A DNA stretch of 64,000 nt from Selaginella moellendorffii (lineage: Eukaryota; Plantae; Lycopodiophyta), in NCBI RefSeq assembly GCF_000143415.4, contig NW_003314329.1:267421-331420 (forward strand). Direction: 5' to 3'. The first letter of the stretch is position 1. Every line of letters starts with the position of its first letter. This document shows, in pieces, positions 4,565-56,500 of this stretch. Made by a program: the position numbers and the translations under genes. Under the pieces are notes generated by a model. The model ran no database searches. It worked only from the letters and a program-made list of their open reading frames with translations, and was not told where the DNA came from.

Positions 4565-6443
4565 AGCTGAGCTCCTCTCGATCTTCCTGATCTTATAACT
4601 TCCACCACTTTGCGAGAGCTGCGATTGGAATCCTTGGTCCTGGCGATAGAGCTAGCAACCTAAAGGGATGGATCATCCTGGGGGCCTAAGTATACGCGGC
4701 CCCTAAATTAAGAGCGGCGTATATTTGTAGCTGCATTTTGGCTTTCGAATCCAATGGCTTCCTTGGATAACAAAAATGGGAAAATTTTATAGCTCCAGGG
4801 GGGAATGGAATATCCACCAGCATAATCTCCCTCTCTGTTTGGTGCCAGATTTCAGATTTTCGGGTTCTTCCTTTTTCCCATGTCTCTCTCTCACATCAAA
4901 CATGCGGCGCGGCAGCTGTAGCATTTTCCCCTCTGTCCTTTTGGAACCGTACATTGCGTACGTACGCATTAGGGCGAAATAGCTCTGCGCCATCCGTCGC
5001 ACTCAGCACTGTCTGCGTCACTATTGAGCTGCATCCCGGTTGGCTCCTTTGACCGGCGCTGCGTACGCTCTGGTCAACTCAAAGACCGCCGCAGCCATTG
5101 TCCGTGGCATGAAAGGTGGCCATGCAAAAACAAAGCAATGTAAATTTTTTGCCCGGCCAGCCCACGCTGTTTTGTTTGCCCGGCTAGCTGGCTGGCCGAG
5201 TTCTTCACTTTCAACCAAAGTAAGTCTTGCTTTGATTTGCGTTGAGCGTCTACAGTACGCCAATTTCTTGTTGCTCGTCTCCTCTCCACTGAGCATAAAT
5301 AATTGCGGAGAAACTTTCGGTGATGTTTACGTTGAGCTCGCAAATGTCAATCCATTTAGTCGGACTTCTGCGGCATACGCATAGAGGAATCCCAGCTTCT
5401 CCCTCTCTTTCCCTTTTCTCTTTTCTCTTTTAGTAAAGAAAGGGAAAGCAGAGTTGAGGCTGTATCTGAGCGAGCGAGCCCCATGCCCAGCCCCACTGGA
5501 CATAAATTTGCATTTTCAACTTCATAAAGCTAAGCAAATACGAAGGCAGAGATTATCGTGCGGTATAAGATCCCATTGTGACCAGTCTTTTGAACTCTAC
5601 CATCACTTAAGATCCCATTTCGATCGATCTTTTGAGCTACGGATAACACAAAGCGGTGCTTCTTTATTTTTAGATTTCCAGGCAACCACCATCTATTGTT
5701 TGGTGAGGGGGTGCAATCCATTCCTTGACGACTCGGCAACAAACGGAGGAGGAGGAGCCCTTCCCCCGGGAATTGGGGAGGTAAGCGGAGTTCTTCTCTC
5801 TATTTTTTTGCGTTCCTTTCGTACGCCGCCAGGGCAGTGACCAATCGCGGAGCAAGGGCAAATGTCCGTCCCATGCGTACACCTGATCCTTTCAACAACC
5901 ATCAAATTCAGAAGATTTTCTATTCCTCCTCTCTCTCGATCAGGAATGAAAAGGCTGTCGCACCGCCAGCCAGCACCCACCTCGGATCATCTTTGGGAAA
6001 TATCAAAAACCCCACCCATCCAATCCAATCCAATTCAATTCAATCGTGATCTCAGTTAGAAGTAGTATAATAGTTCACGTGGAGAAGAGAGCGTAACCAC
6101 ATCTCTGCGATCTTTCCACCGCCTTTGTCTAAATGCGGCGGCCGACGCAGCTTTGCCTGGATCAAGCACCCTGAATCACGGAGATCAAGCATCCGGGCAT
6201 TCAAACGAGACTTCGCGGTTGGAAGCGAAGTCGTCGGTCCACTGTTGCAGTGCTCTGTTTTAGGGCGTTGAATCTTCTACTAGGGCTGTACTTTGTACTA
6301 GCAATCGGCACAACGTGTGTGTACTGGAGTACAGTTGGCGTGTTGCGCCCGGCTCTAGCCGAATAATTCAGCTATCGATAAATCCTATCTCATTCCCATG
6401 GTTTGGAAGTTCAAAGGTTCTAAGTTGAAAGCTTGTCTTAGGT

Positions 6444-47499: not shown

Positions 47500-50400
47500 A
47501 GTGGTAGTATATTATAAAATATCCAGAATTGTTCATTTTTCATTTGAAAATCCAAATCCATGGTGGACCTAGCCACATAGATAAGTATTCAGGATTAACA
47601 TGGACCCAAGCCCATATTAAATTAGATTACAAGGTTAATATGGACCCATGCTTAGATTTCTTCTTTTTCAAAAAGACATTATTAATGAGTGGTTCCAATC
47701 TCCATTAAAATTATTGGTTTGATAACAAAGTGACATTTTTTAAAATGATTTATAAGAAACCAAAGAAAATTACTTAATAAATGATCCATTAGAATTCAAA
47801 TATAAAAAAAAGGCCCATGAACAAAAGTGTACTCTCCTTTTCAATTGATTAAAGGTTTTTGGATATATAGAATTTATATTTGATATCAACTCTACATTAC
47901 AAATTAAAATTGACATTTGGTGGTCCAAGCCACAATTTGCCCCACTCTCTAAACACACCCCTTAGGATTGTCGTAATATGGGAAAAGCTGAAAGACACTG
48001 AATTTCATATATTTTTGGAAAAGGAAATTTATATAATTTAATCCTACTAAACCATTTTTCAAGTCTTTCTCTTTAGTCTTAACAGTTTTAATGGAGATTG
48101 AAATTATTGGGTTGATGAGCATTCAAGATTGACATGGACTCATGCCCATATTAAATCATGAGATTAATATGGACGTACACCTATAGTATATCAGATTTCT
48201 TCTTCTTCTTTAACAGATATTATTAATGGGTGGATCCAATCTTTATTAGAACTATTGATTTAATAGCAAATTTATATTCTTAAAAATAATTATCATAATG
48301 CTATTGATGGGTGGCTCTAATCACCATTGGAACTATTAATTTGATGATAGTAAATTAATATTCCTGAAAAAAATTGTAACAGTAAACAATAAAATATAAA
48401 ATTTTGAGTTTAAACTTTTTGGGAAATTATTTAGCTTAGACATTTCCCATGAACAGCATAATATAAGCAACTAAAAAAAACAACTCAAGAGATGATATAT
48501 AAGGTTCAAATATAGAGGGAAAGGGCTTAGAGTGCACCTCTTTTCCAATTAGTTGAGGGTCTTGAGATACTTAGATTCTTGGTTTAAATAGTACTAGGTT
48601 AAATGACTTTCTAAGAAGTTCAAATACACCTAGGTATCTAATCTAAAAGATATTTAACTCTATATATTTTAACATCCTTGGAAAAAAATTCAAATATTTT
48701 AATCACAATAAACCATTTCTCAAGCCTTTCTCTTTGGTTGTTTATACAAGATCAATAATTGTTATAAAAAACCTAAACCTGTGTTGTCTCATTACTGCCG
48801 ATGAAGTGGAGCTCTCCTCCACCATATGCATAAAATTTTTTATATCATCATAAAGGCTTCCTTAAGAGTTCTATCATCCCACAAAATATTGATGGCAACC
48901 ATTTGGAATGCAAATAGATGTAAATTCAAAGTTTTAACATAATTGTTGCAAATTATTAATAGTAGTATGTTCCAGATCAATATTGTTAAAAATGCTAGTG
49001 AAGTGCTAGATAAAAAAATTCAAAGGATCAGTCTTCTTAAAAAGAGTAGAGAGAGATATATATAAGACTAAAATCCCTAAGTCCCAAAATAGAGCTAAAT
49101 ATATGCCATGTGGTAGTGGTTGAAGCAGAAGTTTAATAAGTGTAATACATTTAAACCAAAAGCTCAAACAAAGAATTATTAACTTATGGAAGTGTTGAGA
49201 CCAAGTTTGACATCAAATCCAAGACTAGGTCCGAATTTGAATCTAAATCCAAAACCGAAACTGAGTCCAAGTTTGAGAGTAAAAGACTAAAGCAATCATT
49301 TCCCAGAGTTTAATAAGTCCTTATGGCAAAGGGAAGACTCTAGGGGAACAAGTGTGGCTAAGAAAAGTTAGTGTGAGCAAAGAAGGTTATACCCATATGT
49401 TAGATAATGATATAGGAGACATGAACTAGGGCGACAAGCTAGATGGCTAGCCTCCTCACTAATTCCATAAATAGTGATTCCAACATTATGAAATCCAAAT
49501 ATATTGATGGAAAAATGAGGTGACTTAGTGAAGTGTTTAAGAATAAACTCTAGCTCTTCTAGGACATCAAATGGTTAATACTCCCAATCCAAAGGATATC
49601 TTATATAACTTATAAAATCTCACTCTAGCCATAAGGTTGAGCCACCTTAGTGGCAAAAGGTGGGGAAAATAGCTATAAAGTTCATATTGGTCCATAGTGT
49701 TTCAAAATGTTATTATAAAGTGATCTTGAAGTTCTCCTCGAGTTGCATCATTCTACAAGCAATCATTAGTTGCAAAGCAACCAACAATCACTCTTCAACT
49801 TGCCTTTCATAATACCGGAATAATCCTTTTGCTAAATAATCAAGAGCATGGTTACGTGGTAAGGAAATCTTAGAAGTTAGTGAAACTTAATAGATAGGTT
49901 TTTGGGCCCTAACCTAGTGGCAGTTTTAGCGAGCACTAATGTGTATGGAAGGATTTGATGGGAATTAAAAAAAGGATATTAAAGGATGGTGTTCCTTTAT
50001 ATTTTGAGGCATCCTAAAGATGCTAAAATGTTGTTATAAAATTACCACTTATTGGATAGATGGTTTAGTTTTGGAGAAACAAACCATAATATATGTGGTT
50101 TTAGAATATGACAATGAGGATAGATATAGTTTTAGTATAAGAGGTTTTATATATATTTTTCAATTAGTATTATTATATTTGTATCATGTTCTTTCATTTT
50201 GCAATGTCTTATGCCATAGGAAGCACTTCATTTAAGCTTTTGCATCTAATTATGAGGCATAAATCCCTAAGCCCCAAAGTGGAGTTAAAAGGGTGAAGTT
50301 AATACATATTAAATATATATTTATGTATGTCAAATATTAATTTTTTGCAAATATTTAAATGTTAGCCTCTCAAAATATCCATTATATAATGCTATTTTGG

Positions 50401-50700
50401 TCATGATATTCAATTCAATGCCAAAATTATTTTCTATATAATATTAAGAGAGAAGGGAAAATGATGAAAAACTATTAATAAAGACAATAGAAAATAATTG
50501 AACACTTCTTTAGTCAAACCTTAAACTAATCTAGGATGAGTTACTGGATGCCCATTTATATATATGGCTATTGGGTTCAAATATTATGAGTAGAAATGTG
50601 AGATTTGATTCCTATAGTAGACAATGGTGGCAAAATATACTTTAGTAAACGTAGAAAGATGGTGTCATTATCTAGTTCGCAACATTTGCTTGCTTTTTTT
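47500..50700. repeat. AT-rich decayed repeat/TE zone, including old copies of the 62206-type LTR (about 47751-47862 and 48462-48630)
   Basis: Alignable by eye to tgtaagcaaccaaagggaac...ggttcaaatatagagggaaagggc; other degenerate direct repeats; almost no ORFs. Confidence 0.65.
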
Positions 50701-50825
50701 CAGTTCCACGAAAATTCTCCCTGGAGCTTATGTCTGATCTAGCGTAGCAAGTGCATACATAGGGATGTAAGGTTATGCTACATTGATTGTTCTCATATCT
50801 TTATAAAAACACAGAGGATAAATGA

Positions 50826-52177
50826 CTAGCTAGAACTATTACGGTTTGTAGCAAGAGCTCTCTCTCCTTCAAACAATCTCTTGTGGACTCTAGCAAACAA
50901 AGATGGCTGCGGGCCGCAACTGTTGTCAGTCATCTTGAAGTTGTCAAAATCCAAGCCGACTTTAGCAGCAGCAAGCCGCAGCTCTGGGAAATTGGACTTG
51001 GGGAGGCTTGAACTCCGTGTGTAGACGACGGCCCCACCATAGCCGTCCCATGCATCGTTGGACCCATTGTAGTACACGAACACGTAGTCATCCGGTTGGT
51101 TGTTGAGCCGGGCGGAGATGATGAACCTGCACCAATCAATCCGTCAATTTTTCATATAGGATTCGCAGCTATGTTGGCAATCGCACACCGGACCTACACA
51201 CACCGAAGCTTTGGAAGCTTGCGAAACACTCACCAATCGTCTTTGTAATTGAGGTACTCGTTGTCATGATTGGACAGCACACCCGGGCGTTTGGGATTCT
51301 TCTGCACGAAATTTTGCATCGCGTTGCGTGTGATGAAACCGCCGTCGGGGGTGGTCACCCTCCACGTCAGTTTTCCGGTGAGCTTGTGGGGACTGGCCGA
51401 GAACTCATGGACTTGGCAATCGTAGAGATCGAACAGGGGGTTGAGACCGCTGGTGATATACCATGTGCCTGTGAAGTCTTGGGTGTTGAACTTTTCCACC
51501 AAAGCGCAGTCTGGAGGTACCGGGTAGGAGCCGTCGTTGGCACTTTGAGGGATGCACTTTTTTTTGCTCAGGAGGCATGTGTTGAATTCCTCTACGGCCT
51601 TGTTCTGGAAAATGTCTCCGCATCTGACCTATGTTCCGATACAAAATGAGAGAACAGAAACAGAGTGAGCAACTTTAAATCAAATAATACCTGGCAATTC
51701 AAGTCTCCTGGGCTGCAAGTTTCCAGACAAACTAAATTGGCAGCGCATGAAGGATCTCCCACGCATCGAACCAGCTCGGATCTGAAGAACATGCACAACT
51801 ATGAGATCAGGTGGATTCAAAATAAACAGTGGAACCCAGCAAATGAGGAGGGGAGCACAACAGCACCTGCATCCACCCAGAAGACATTTCCATGTTTTTT
51901 GAGCAGTCTCGATGTCCAGAGCTCCAGCATGGTTTGCTTGCAAGAGCAAACACGTCCCCAGGAGCAAGCCCAATGCATTGACTTTGAATCCCGGTCCGGT
52001 ACTTGTCGTTGTTACATTCTTCACACTTCGTACAAGCGGGGGCGGAGCCGTGGTACTGACAATCATCTTCTCGCTCTTCTTCCCGCATAGCAGCTTCCTG
52101 CTCTTCACATTCGGCCCAGTACTGGTTGTTGCCACTCTTCGAACAAGCCCATGCGGGGTCGTGGTACTGGCAAACAT
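50826..52177 (-). CDS. VDE: Violaxanthin de-epoxidase-like protein with a short C-terminus; start uncertain
   Basis: Bipartite targeting peptide ending AGA|LD, Cys-rich domain [24 protein letters not shown], lipocalin domain [55 protein letters not shown]. Confidence 0.88.
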
Positions 52178-52599
52178 CTGCTCCTTCTTCTCCCTCTTCA
52201 AGCCGCAGCTACTCTTTTCATTCAAGTTGCAAGCGACCGCCTTGCAGCGATACGTTTTAGAAAGCCTCCTCACAAACAAGGGAGCGACCCGAGATGGACG
52301 TGCGCGGGGCGTGGGACACTGCTCTTCCTTCCTCCTCCTACAGGGTTACAAAGTCCGTGGTTTGGTCCGAGCTGCGTACAAATCTTGCTAGGACAGAGTC
52401 TTTTTCTCGATATGACATTGGGTTGTGGGCCATTTCATTCATTAATGCGGCCCACCCGCCAGGATGTTCTTAGAAAAACGCACGTTTTCCATGTACGATA
52501 GTTTGAAGACCCGGTGTCAGCTTTAACACATAGGGTTGATTTGCAGTCGCTTTTTCTATAAAGTAATAATAAAAAAATCTTTTTCGTTGCTACAATCTA

Positions 52600-53723
52600 T
52601 TATTTTTTATGGTGACGACTTGACACCAGCTTCTCCAGCTCCAATTCTCCACCAACGGCTTCCAGCTCCTATCAGGGCCATGAATCCGTCAAAAGTTTGG
52701 TTTCCAGTCTCTCGCTCACCTTTAGCCCCAGGAACAAACCGTACGGAACGCCATCAAACAGATTGGCATGGTGAATCTGAGTGGAAGGTTTGATGGTAAA
52801 TCTAGAGCTGAATGATTTATGGACAAACCTGGTGAGCAGCAGCTACCTTCCGAAAATATGGCACATCGGCCAGTGGGCCAACTGAAAACCGTTGGTGCAC
52901 CAGGCCGTCGTGAACAAACATGTAGGCCATCCCGAAGATGGTGATGCCCAGGCCCTGACGTGATATGCAATATTTTCAAAGTTACAAGAAATGCTTCTAT
53001 TACTTACTGCTCCAAAGCACAGGCCAGGAAGGAGTCCTTCGTGGGAGAATCCGTAAGACATGAGAGCTATCGCGGGGACTGCGTTCACAATGGCAAAAAC
53101 ATCGTTGACCTCAAATGGACCTTGGCGAGGGAGATGATGAGACTGTTGTAGAGAGACTCGTGGCAATTTAACTGTCCGAAAATTTGTTTGTGCGTTACCT
53201 TGTGCATGCTCCACAAGCAAGAGTGCCATAGCGCTTTGTGTGCCCATCTAGCCCAAAACTCCATGCCCACCTGAGAAACAGAATAAAATCAATCTTGAAC
53301 AGCAGCTTTGAACATACTCACAGCTGCACCTAATGCCAAAGACACGGTACCAAGGATTTCCAGAGCAGGCAATTCACTGCTGCCTTTCTGAACATAGTTA
53401 AAGATTCTCTTTTGTGATCAAGCCTGTGTGTGTCAGAGTTCACATACCTCCTGCATTTGCCACACGAATCTGTAACACGCAGCTCCAATGCTGAGACCAC
53501 CAATCAATGTGCTTGAGGCAACAGCAGCGAACAAATATGTTGTGCGCTCTGCTTTCTTCTTCTTTGTTGCATCTTGCTTCTTGCAAGTACGAGATTGCCC
53601 ATCCTCCGACATTGACGCACCCAATACAATCGCTTTCGACTTCGGCCTTCTCAGGGATTTGCGCAATGGCGGGAGAGAAAGGAGCCCGCGAGGAATGAAC
53701 GACGAACAAGGCACTAGCGCCAT
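52600..53723 (-). CDS. BCH: Non-heme di-iron beta-carotene 3-hydroxylase, 7 exons
   Basis: ERTTYLFAAV, MEFWARWAHKALWH, HKSHH, FEVNDVFA, YMFVHDGLVH, AAAHQIHH and GVPYGLFLG; all His boxes present. Confidence 0.92.
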
Positions 53724-53859
53724 CGAAGCTGCTGCCAATTCAGATGCATGGGTAAACCCAGCGGATACTTAGAATTCTAAAAGATAGGATCTCCGTCTGT
53801 TTGAAGGTCCCTTGGAATATTTACAACTTCATTTTGCTTTAATCCCCCCTGCACACTCC

Positions 53860-54510
53860 AATTCTCGTTGTCTCCTGGTGAGGCGATTGCGAGACATGAA
53901 TCCAAACCAGGCCGGGATCGCCAATTCGAAGCAGGTCCTCCAGGCGTGCGAGAACGACGGAGAGGAACCCGTTTGTGGTGTGGGGAGCAACGTTTACGCC
54001 CATCTACGCGGGCGGTGTCGTGCCCCTGCTGCGCTGTGCGGTTCGTGCCGGAGGTGGCCGGGCAGATTTGCAGCGTTTGTGACTTGGCGGTGGTGGATGC
54101 TGTGTGCTGGTCATTAAGCGGGGGAGGATTGTGCGCCATTCCCAAAGTTCGTGGATTCTACCATCACCAAAGATTCAAACAAGATAGCGCGAATGGGCAT
54201 ATGCAGAAGCCACCGCGAGTGTCTTTCAGAATTCTTTGGAATCCTTCCAGAAACATCTTCTTTTTTTGTTGCATTATACCCCGGATTAATTCCTCCCTTG
54301 TGACGCAGCACACGCCAATTCTCGTTGTCTCCCATCTCACACAAGACGACACACGCTGGAGCGAATATACAATACTCGTCATCTAAAAGCCCCAGCCCCA
54401 GCCCCTCTCTTCTCTCCCTGGTTTTGCTTTCTCAGTGCTCTCGCTACTTTCTTTTTCTCCCTGGTTTTGCTTTCTCAGTGCTGTCGCTGGTTTCCTTTTC
54501 TCCCTGGTAC
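53860..54510. repeat. Inverted, internally deleted copy of the 35130-36160 segment
   Basis: Reverse-complement match to the 35 kb segment, lacking about 270 bp of it. Confidence 0.85.
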
Positions 54511-55199: not shown

Positions 55200-56500
55200 A
55201 GATTGCATCTTTCTGTTTTGGGATGCCAGGTCTTGCTCTTGCCGATCACCTCTGTGCGGCTGTCCACCGGGACGGTGTGGAGCGGTACCTTCGGTGGTGA
55301 GCTTGTAGATGAGCGCTGGACCGTTGCGGACGTTTGGAGGCGGCGAGTCCGACCAGCCTTTCTCGAGGGCATACGTCAAGATGCTCGCGTGATCTCGAGG
55401 GCGATTCTAAAGACCATCCGATCAATCTGCTTGAGGGCCTCGAGCGAGCTCTGGAGGTCGCAAAAAACCGGCGCGAAGTTTTTGATCCCGAGTTGCCGAG
55501 TGAGAAGGCGCATTGCACTGTCGAAGGCTCTAAGATCCGGTCCCCGCATAGAAGATGGCGTCAACTGTCGCCGATGGAGCCTCGACTCTCTTGGAGACGT
55601 CGTTCCTCAGATTCTTGACTAGAATCAAGCCGTGCGCCTTGGCAAAGCGGTTGCGGGGCACGAAACACCCCACGACCCGCTGGCTTTCTTCGGCCGAAGT
55701 GTCATTACTTCTCGGGATTTGTACGTACTGTTGTGACGGGCCGAGCATAAAAGCACGGCGTTCTCCGCTGGATTGCAAGACAATCTTCTCTGATTCAGCT
55801 CCGCTCTTCGAATGTTTATCAGTGATGTGTCCTCTGAAGTGGCAAAGTCGTAAGTCCTCAAAGCCTTTTCTTTGACGTAATACAGCACCCCCGCACTGAT
55901 TGTATAAGCCGGCCTCTCTCTTTCGAGCTTGAAGACGATAATTCCACTGCCCTGTCCTGTCGCAAGAAAGTTCATCTCGGGTCCCTCCTGAAAGTTTGTA
56001 CGGCAGAACGCTTGGACAAGTCCCAGACTCGAGTTTGATGTCCCGGCAGTGTGGAACATGACACAGGAAACGTTGTTGGTGTGACCAACCTCCCAAGCCT
56101 GTTTCTGGAACCAATGCAAGCGTTTAGAAACTAGAACAAAAGAACAAGTCCACATATTAACATTTATCCTCCACAGCTTTACTTGTCGATCGTCAGCACC
56201 AGAGACAACTAGCGGCAAGCTTGGATGGAAAGCAGCCCTGTCATGCCCCTCGAGAACATACTTGACCACCGCATCGTCACCACCAAAACGTTAGCTGTTC
56301 ATCTGCGTGAGTCTCAGAATTCTGTGAAGATCCTCGGCTGGAGAGACCGTCTCAGCGACGCAAACACCATGAGATCGTCCTTGACGTGAAACGAAGCCGT
56401 AGTGATTGTGTCCCGTCAGCACGTCCGGGACTGCTAGTTCCAAATCCTGATGGCTTGATCGTCGCTAGCACTTACGATCCAGGGATACTCCTATGAACAT
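55200..56500 (-). pseudogene. COPA: Coatomer alpha subunit pseudogene with large internal deletions
   Basis: YPWIVSASDDQ.IRIWN, LTGHNHY, GGDDAVVKYVLEGHD, FHPSLPLVVSGADDRQVKLW, VFKLERERPA, then C-terminal AMRLL.RQLGIKNF; frameshifts present. Confidence 0.8.

Follow-up and report, generated by a model that had tools for sequence, protein, structure and literature searches.

Two adjacent carotenoid genes on the minus strand

The window analysed here is a stretch of 64,000 nucleotides from Selaginella moellendorffii, in which we studied two neighbouring genes: a divergent paralog of beta-carotene hydroxylase (BCH) and, downstream of it, a paralog of violaxanthin de-epoxidase (VDE) without the C-terminal tail. 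The window lies on scaffold GL377633.1 (100% identity over 6.6 kb; record position equals window position plus 267,420), and the other haplotype, GL377643.1, is about 98% identical to it. Both genes are intact and both are on the minus strand. The BCH gene (52600-53723) encodes 266 amino acids in seven exons (53723-53448, 53387-53322, 53270-53199, 53142-53008, 52954-52829, 52776-52720 and 52668-52600, stop included). Its ATG is at 53723, its stop ends at 52600, all six introns are GT-AG and all 12 splice sites are good. The VDE gene (50826-52177) encodes 365 amino acids in four exons (52177-51867, 51781-51691, 51628-51234 and 51126-50826, stop included), with its ATG at 52177, its stop at 50828-50826 and three GT-AG introns. 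Between the BCH stop and the VDE ATG lies a spacer of 422 bp (52178-52599, minus strand), into which the BCH 3' untranslated region extends to about 52548 and the VDE 5' untranslated region up to at least 52304. The initial annotation had described the genes as co-oriented, with a few hundred base pairs between the BCH stop at 52600 and the VDE start, and this is the arrangement we find.

Both gene models agree with RNA. Reads and contigs from four public runs were placed on positions 50000-54200, contigs in the case of X1 and X7 and raw reads in the case of X23 and X24. All nine introns, six in BCH and three in VDE, were seen as joints at the predicted positions in spliced RNA contigs. The six BCH joints came from contigs of runs X1 and X7, and a single 1221-nt contig of run X1 spans all four VDE exons with zero mismatches. 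One contig of run X7 extends, without splicing, beyond the VDE stop (loose end at 50849); thus, the stop belongs to the mature mRNA.

Retained and altered residues in the two proteins

The window BCH is most likely a plastid non-haem di-iron beta-ring hydroxylase (BCH or CrtR-b, Pfam PF04116 superfamily). Its single exons are too short for a Pfam match, and the family was assigned via profile and core identity. A profile of 118 plant BCHs gives it 409 bits, compared with 468-562 bits for the profile's own members. Its core is 71% identical to that of the canonical S. moellendorffii BCH (P0286, XP_024515817.1, 302 amino acids), and that protein in turn shares 82% identity with the consensus of 118 land-plant BCHs. 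In a word search with the canonical BCH, the matches listed were seed-plant BCHs at 80-87% identity, and the diverged copies were not among them. All four histidine motifs (HX4H, HX2HH, HX4H, HX2HH) are intact, as had been noted from the sequence initially. Motifs 1 and 2 (H125-x4-H130 and H137-K138-S-H140-H141) lie at 53134-53240 on the minus strand and include an unusual lysine, K138, where other BCHs have glutamate. Some bacterial CrtZ enzymes also carry lysine at the equivalent position. Motifs 3 and 4 (H198-x4-H203 and H224-x2-H227-H228; 52768-52912, minus strand) span intron 5, with S207, the product of P207S, between them.

The protein differs from the 118 plant BCHs at 18 columns that are at least 95% conserved, and it carries a three-residue insertion. 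The 18 columns include S132C, P207S, P243L and, inside the second His motif, E138K. Four departures from the plant consensus had been named in the initial annotation, and all four are in the sequence. Three of them, MHKSHH (E138K), RFSVGP (P207S) and FLGLKE (P243L), fall on columns 99% conserved in the 118 land-plant BCHs; the fourth, HHANLF, is in a variable motif, which reads HHADLF in the canonical Selaginella BCH. The terminal branch of the window BCH, whose position in the tree is uncertain, has a length of 1.96 against a median of 0.28, about sevenfold.

The VDE paralog was identified by Pfam PF07137, which matches exons 2-4 (E = 1.3e-50 for exon 3 and 1.3e-22 for exon 4), and by PDB 3CQN, the lipocalin domain of Arabidopsis VDE, which matches exons 3 and 4 (E = 2.9e-36 and 3.8e-30) at about 60% identity. 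The Cys-rich N-terminal domain (amino acids 97-159; 51553-51888, minus strand) extends across introns 1 and 2 and has all ten conserved cysteines, as judged from an alignment with the canonical VDE and the cysteine list in PMC13181403. The lipocalin domain (50916-51552, minus strand) is about 60% identical both to Arabidopsis VDE and to the canonical Selaginella VDE. In a residue-by-residue alignment to 3CQN it keeps, in Arabidopsis numbering, D98, D114, D117, Q119, H121, F123, R138, Q153, F155, H168, D177, W179, Y198, D206 and Y214. Among these, D177 and Y198 are catalytic, W179, F123, F155 and Q153 bind violaxanthin, and D114 and Q119 bind ascorbate (PMC13181403). H121 and Y214 form the pH trigger, and D98, D117, H168 and D206 act in pH activation (PMC13181403).

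What the protein lacks is the Glu-rich domain at the C-terminus, of about 90-100 residues. After the DNSC motif only 29 amino acids remain before the stop (50826-50915, minus strand), six of them basic and two acidic, so that the remainder is net basic; in most of the 144 family members retrieved that contain this motif, 80-120 amino acids come after it. The mature protein has a predicted isoelectric point of 6.1 and a charge of -2 at pH 7, compared with 5.3 and -7 for the canonical protein. A hidden tail exon further downstream was considered and rejected: nothing similar to a tail-coding sequence was found in the 2.3 kb downstream of the gene, the RNA held no further exon, and it is unspliced through the stop.

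The first 86 amino acids (51919-52177, minus strand) presumably form a bipartite targeting region. Translation by eye gives a Ser/Thr-rich part, a hydrophobic stretch and A-G-A before the mature N-terminus. This region is almost neutral between the window and a second tail-less gene described below (ratio of nonsynonymous to synonymous divergence, dN/dS, 0.94). It also contains an internal duplication of about 25 amino acids (S-T-T-x-P ... T-T-S-T-G-P, twice) in exon 1 (51980-52168, minus strand); the unit occurs once at the second locus.

Duplication of the pair and subsequent constraint

Whether canonical copies exist elsewhere in the genome was a check suggested by the initial annotation, and both do. 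The canonical VDE (P0005, XP_002986185.2, 438 amino acids, full tail) lies near 839 kb on scaffold GL377637.1 and the canonical BCH (P0286) near 512 kb on the same scaffold; in neither case is there a gene of the other family within 10 kb. The canonical genes are thus unlinked, and the window genes are extra, diverged copies. In Riccia, too, the BCH has no VDE within 10 kb. The exon structure of the window BCH is that of the canonical seven-exon gene, and the four-exon structure of the window VDE is the same as in the canonical VDE. Since intron positions are shared with the canonical genes in both families, the paralogs arose by DNA duplication; an origin as retroposed copies was rejected because the introns are conserved.

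A second locus with the same arrangement (L003) was found on GL377637.1 near 220 kb. It encodes another tail-less VDE, XP_002986217.2 (P0405, 393 amino acids), to which the fragment P0001 belongs. A BCH remnant lies directly upstream of this VDE in the same orientation, and downstream of the VDE there is an SDR gene. At the DNA level the window and the second locus are 84% identical over the VDE with its introns and 75.5% identical over the BCH. The same BCH-VDE order, together with this identity, shows that the pair was duplicated as a unit, and the adjacency is therefore no one-off.

Both window genes have been under purifying selection. For the mature VDE, comparison of the window with the second locus gave dN 0.038, dS 0.186 and dN/dS 0.20. 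Between the window VDE and the canonical VDE, dS has reached saturation at about 2, which makes the tail-less lineage much older than the duplication of the pair. For the BCH, 113 codons could be cleanly aligned between the window copy and the copy at the second locus (dS 0.25, dN/dS 0.27). These copies differ at 15 amino acids, of which 12 are derived in the second copy, one in the window copy and two are ambiguous, so that only 1 of the 13 polarised changes fell on the window lineage. E138K and S132C are common to both copies and hence predate the duplication of the pair. The window BCH thus changed fast at an early stage and has been nearly constant since, which argues against decay.

In a tree of 49 family members, the window VDE pairs with the second tail-less protein at 100/100 support and falls among land-plant VDEs, within a backbone that is unresolved. 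By this placement the window gene is a VDE paralog and not a member of VDL/VDR, which have Glu for D177 and a clade of their own; the window protein keeps D177. The label "VDE-like" used initially understates the relation, as the gene sits in the VDE clade itself with about 60% identity, though without the C-terminal domain.

Several further observations concern these families. P0405 has Glu for the catalytic D177 (YREDW, compared with YKDDW in the window), the state described for VDL/VDR, and this change is derived in P0405. The second pair (about 220 kb), the canonical BCH (about 512 kb) and the canonical VDE (about 839 kb) all lie on the one 982-kb scaffold GL377637.1, which hints that the family grew by local duplication. 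On the same scaffold, about 5 kb upstream of the canonical VDE and between two BURP genes, there is a partial VDE-like stretch with parts of exons 2-3 (4956-5359 of locus L001). It is 48-53% identical to the window VDE and is probably a gene fragment. A word search with the 208-amino-acid tail-less fragment P0001, with a reach of up to 364 amino acids, returned no further tail-less proteins. Some gymnosperm VDE-family proteins have short tails, of 9-53 residues after DNxC (P0009; P0155 from Taxus chinensis; P0203 from Araucaria; P0167 from Cryptomeria), and the first two of these group together beside angiosperm VDEs with 100/99 support. Independent tail shortening could lie behind this, although some of the models may be truncated, since the Taxus entry carries a partial annotation and those from Araucaria and Cryptomeria are short.

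The DNA around the pair had been called repeat-rich, which holds only weakly: the only tandem repeat within 47-56 kb, and the nearest repeat to the pair, has a 43-bp unit in 2.3 copies (54409-54508), and retroelement open reading frames are several kb or more away. No gene without introns was found within 10 kb of the pair. An intronless PRA1 gene of the window has an identical product on two scaffolds of S. moellendorffii assembly GCA_000143415.2. Just upstream of BCH there is a short match to the coatomer-alpha C-terminus (PF06957; 53868-54383, plus strand), where RNA reads fit 53963-54012 only and are unlike the sequence on both sides, and a WD40 coatomer-like open reading frame lies at 55625-56269 on the minus strand. 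Both look like rearranged or partial coatomer-alpha pieces.

Expression and possible roles of the pair

RNA depth at 52397-52537, within the spacer, is zero in every run, so BCH and VDE make separate transcripts; a single bicistronic transcript was rejected on the same evidence. The BCH:VDE depth ratio ranges from about 0.05 in X23 and X24 to about 2-3 in X1 and X7, a roughly 50-fold spread between runs, where contig depth is a poor measure of expression and part of the VDE reads stem from paralogs. The two genes show no tight coupling of their RNA levels and no sign of a fixed ratio. The co-regulation that had been proposed for the pair is not supported by the separate transcripts, the zero depth between them and the shifting ratio.

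In X23 and X24, one third of the reads over 51513 carry a 3-nt deletion typical of the second locus, from which it follows that both tail-less VDEs are transcribed. Most spliced reads of these two runs join 51628 to 51692 with one extra T, and do not use the window's own junction; they also carry many other mismatches to the window. This points to an expressed allele or close paralog that differs at the exon 2-3 junction.

We consider it moderately probable that the window holds two functional, lineage-specific paralogs of zeaxanthin-forming enzymes, which have been adjacent since before a segmental duplication and which form no operon-like or rhodoxanthin cluster. The BCH paralog would have gone through a burst of change that included E138K in a His box, and would then have been held constant. 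Its most likely activity is still the hydroxylation of carotene rings, with altered properties or in another expression niche. For the VDE paralog, whose active site is intact, the likeliest role is that of an ascorbate-dependent de-epoxidase in the lumen. Without the acidic tail, and with a less acidic mature protein, its pH-dependent membrane binding or its oligomerisation would be expected to change, and this in turn could make de-epoxidation more constitutive or shift its pH response. A functional link between the two genes is possible, in that both may feed the zeaxanthin pool. The analysis shows the gene structures, their transcription, the conserved residues, the lost tail, the joint duplication and purifying selection; the enzyme activities, the targeting, the consequences of the lost tail and any link in function are inferred.

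Several results weigh against this explanation. E138K, P207S and P243L are non-conservative changes at near-invariant sites and could alter or impair catalysis. The BCH at the second locus is dead although the VDE beside it is intact, so an obligate pairing of the two genes is not supported: exon 1 of this BCH is missing, there are frameshifts and deletions, and His ligands are lost (H198 is replaced by Q, and HxxHH is disrupted). In X23 and X24, VDE depth reaches 25-54 and BCH depth is 0-2.7, so that BCH is almost silent while VDE-type reads are abundant. The approximately unbiased (AU) tests did not reject a Selaginella-specific origin of the BCH (p = 0.19) or a single Selaginella clade for the VDE (p = 0.29), but such tests only fail to reject here, and the trees, with their backbone unresolved, do not give the timing of the paralogs' origin. 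Finally, a 2026 review terms both terminal domains of VDE essential for activity while treating the C-terminal role as an open question (PMC13181403), and a nearly tail-less protein might on that account be inactive or do something else. The literature on the tail is divided. A partial C-terminal truncation reportedly left activity largely intact (Hieber 2002, as cited in PMC4412432), and algal VDL enzymes act on carotenoids despite having no Glu-rich domain (PMC13181403). In these enzymes the domain is absent or uncharged, which is thought to change pH dependence and membrane association (PMC13181403, PMC2483416).

Other explanations were weighed against the same observations. The initial annotation had suggested that the pair may be a co-regulated, neofunctionalised mini-cluster for a specialised photoprotective pigment such as rhodoxanthin. 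This would be a specialised cluster of two genes, held adjacent by selection, in which the diverged BCH and the tail-less VDE jointly open a route to rhodoxanthin or to some other unusual xanthophyll or retro-carotenoid. We find this very unlikely, even though two non-homologous carotenoid genes are adjacent and co-oriented at two paralogous loci, and both, after an old divergence from their canonical counterparts (dS saturated), are now constrained. The precedent on which the proposal drew is real: a BCH variant of honeysuckle, LHRS, is a rhodoxanthin synthase, and its T72, I102 and P103 confer rhodoxanthin synthesis when put into tomato BCH or bacterial CrtZ (PMC7176425). Position 72 immediately precedes the first His ligand; 102 and 103 come 30 and 31 residues after it in the chain, counted from position 72. 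At these sites the window BCH has A124 (53241-53243, minus strand), just upstream of His motif 1, and F154 and A155 (codons at 53092-53097, minus strand), all of them ordinary BCH residues, so the LHRS determinants are absent. A literature search found no report of rhodoxanthin in Selaginella, the co-mention of both terms that was checked being generic in the text available, and nothing on a Selaginella BCH-VDE pair or a tail-less VDE; the accumulation of this pigment by Selaginella species, from which the initial annotation started, found no confirmation there. Expression of the two genes is moreover not tightly coupled, the second locus retains a VDE without a BCH, and the VDE active site is unchanged. 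A role like that of VDL, in which the tail-less VDE isomerises or converts violaxanthin, for example to neoxanthin, in biosynthesis and not in the light-regulated cycle, seems equally improbable. Algal VDL enzymes do lack the Glu-rich domain (PMC13181403, PMC2483416), and the sister copy P0405 has the VDL/VDR-type D177E, but D177 is retained in the window copy, which has about 60% identity to the canonical VDE and groups with land-plant VDEs instead of with distant outliers.

It is unlikely that the VDE alone matters, with a BCH that is expressed but catalytically impaired or redundant and heading for loss, and an adjacency that is a relic. The substitutions in 18 near-invariant columns, the very long branch, the dead sister copy and the near silence of BCH in X23 and X24 would fit such a course; the frame, however, is intact, the 12 splice sites are good, all His ligands are kept, the window lineage accounts for a single polarised change since the duplication, and BCH contigs are deeper than VDE contigs in X1 and X7. 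That two unrelated duplicates came to lie side by side by chance, their linkage without biological meaning, is very unlikely. Separate transcripts, uncoupled expression, the non-adjacent canonical genes and the Riccia BCH without a nearby VDE are what it would predict, yet with about three VDE-family genes in the genome a VDE is an improbable immediate neighbour of a BCH by chance, and the arrangement lasted long enough to be duplicated as a unit. Chance adjacency also overlaps with the explanation we prefer, which claims no selected linkage. A further reading, that Selaginella evolved and retained a linked two-enzyme module, is rather doubtful. In such a module a re-tuned hydroxylase and a VDE without its acidic regulatory tail would make zeaxanthin or a related xanthophyll available without regard to the lumen-pH switch. 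If it were true, the pair would be a rare carotenoid gene cluster in a land plant and a natural experiment on the function of the VDE C-terminal domain.

The locus provides a natural VDE without the C-terminal domain, with all active-site residues kept, in a genome that also has a canonical VDE, and purifying selection acts on it. Set side by side, the two enzymes from Selaginella would be a direct test of the tail's part in pH-dependent membrane binding. In the BCH, change came in a burst and gave way to constraint, as would be expected if function had changed, in a di-iron family where three substitutions are known to create new chemistry. Should the linkage prove conserved and functional, it would represent an unusual case of clustered plant carotenoid genes.

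Among known systems, the closest to the window BCH are plant BCH1/2 and CrtR-b, including the canonical XP_024515817.1, with which it shares the four His motifs, 71% core identity and the seven-exon structure; it is unlike them in the 18 conserved-column changes, the three-residue insertion and a branch about seven times the median. LHRS resembles it in being a BCH paralog that departs from the consensus at conserved positions, but T72, I102 and P103 of LHRS are A, F and A in the window. Plant VDEs (Arabidopsis NPQ1/VDE, 3CQN; canonical XP_002986185.2) have in common with the window VDE the ten-cysteine domain, about 60% lipocalin identity, four exons and all the catalytic, substrate-binding and pH-sensing residues, and they differ from it in that the window protein ends in a net basic remainder of 29 residues and has a mature isoelectric point of 6.1 instead of 5.3. 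Laboratory truncations of VDE (Hieber et al. 2002, via PMC4412432) likewise removed part of the acidic tail and reportedly left most activity; the truncation in the window is, by contrast, natural, fixed in a paralog and under purifying selection. Algal VDLs are three-domain relatives whose Glu-rich domain is also absent or uncharged. They have E for D177, a larger lipocalin domain and a separate clade, whereas D177 is retained in the window protein, a member of the VDE clade.

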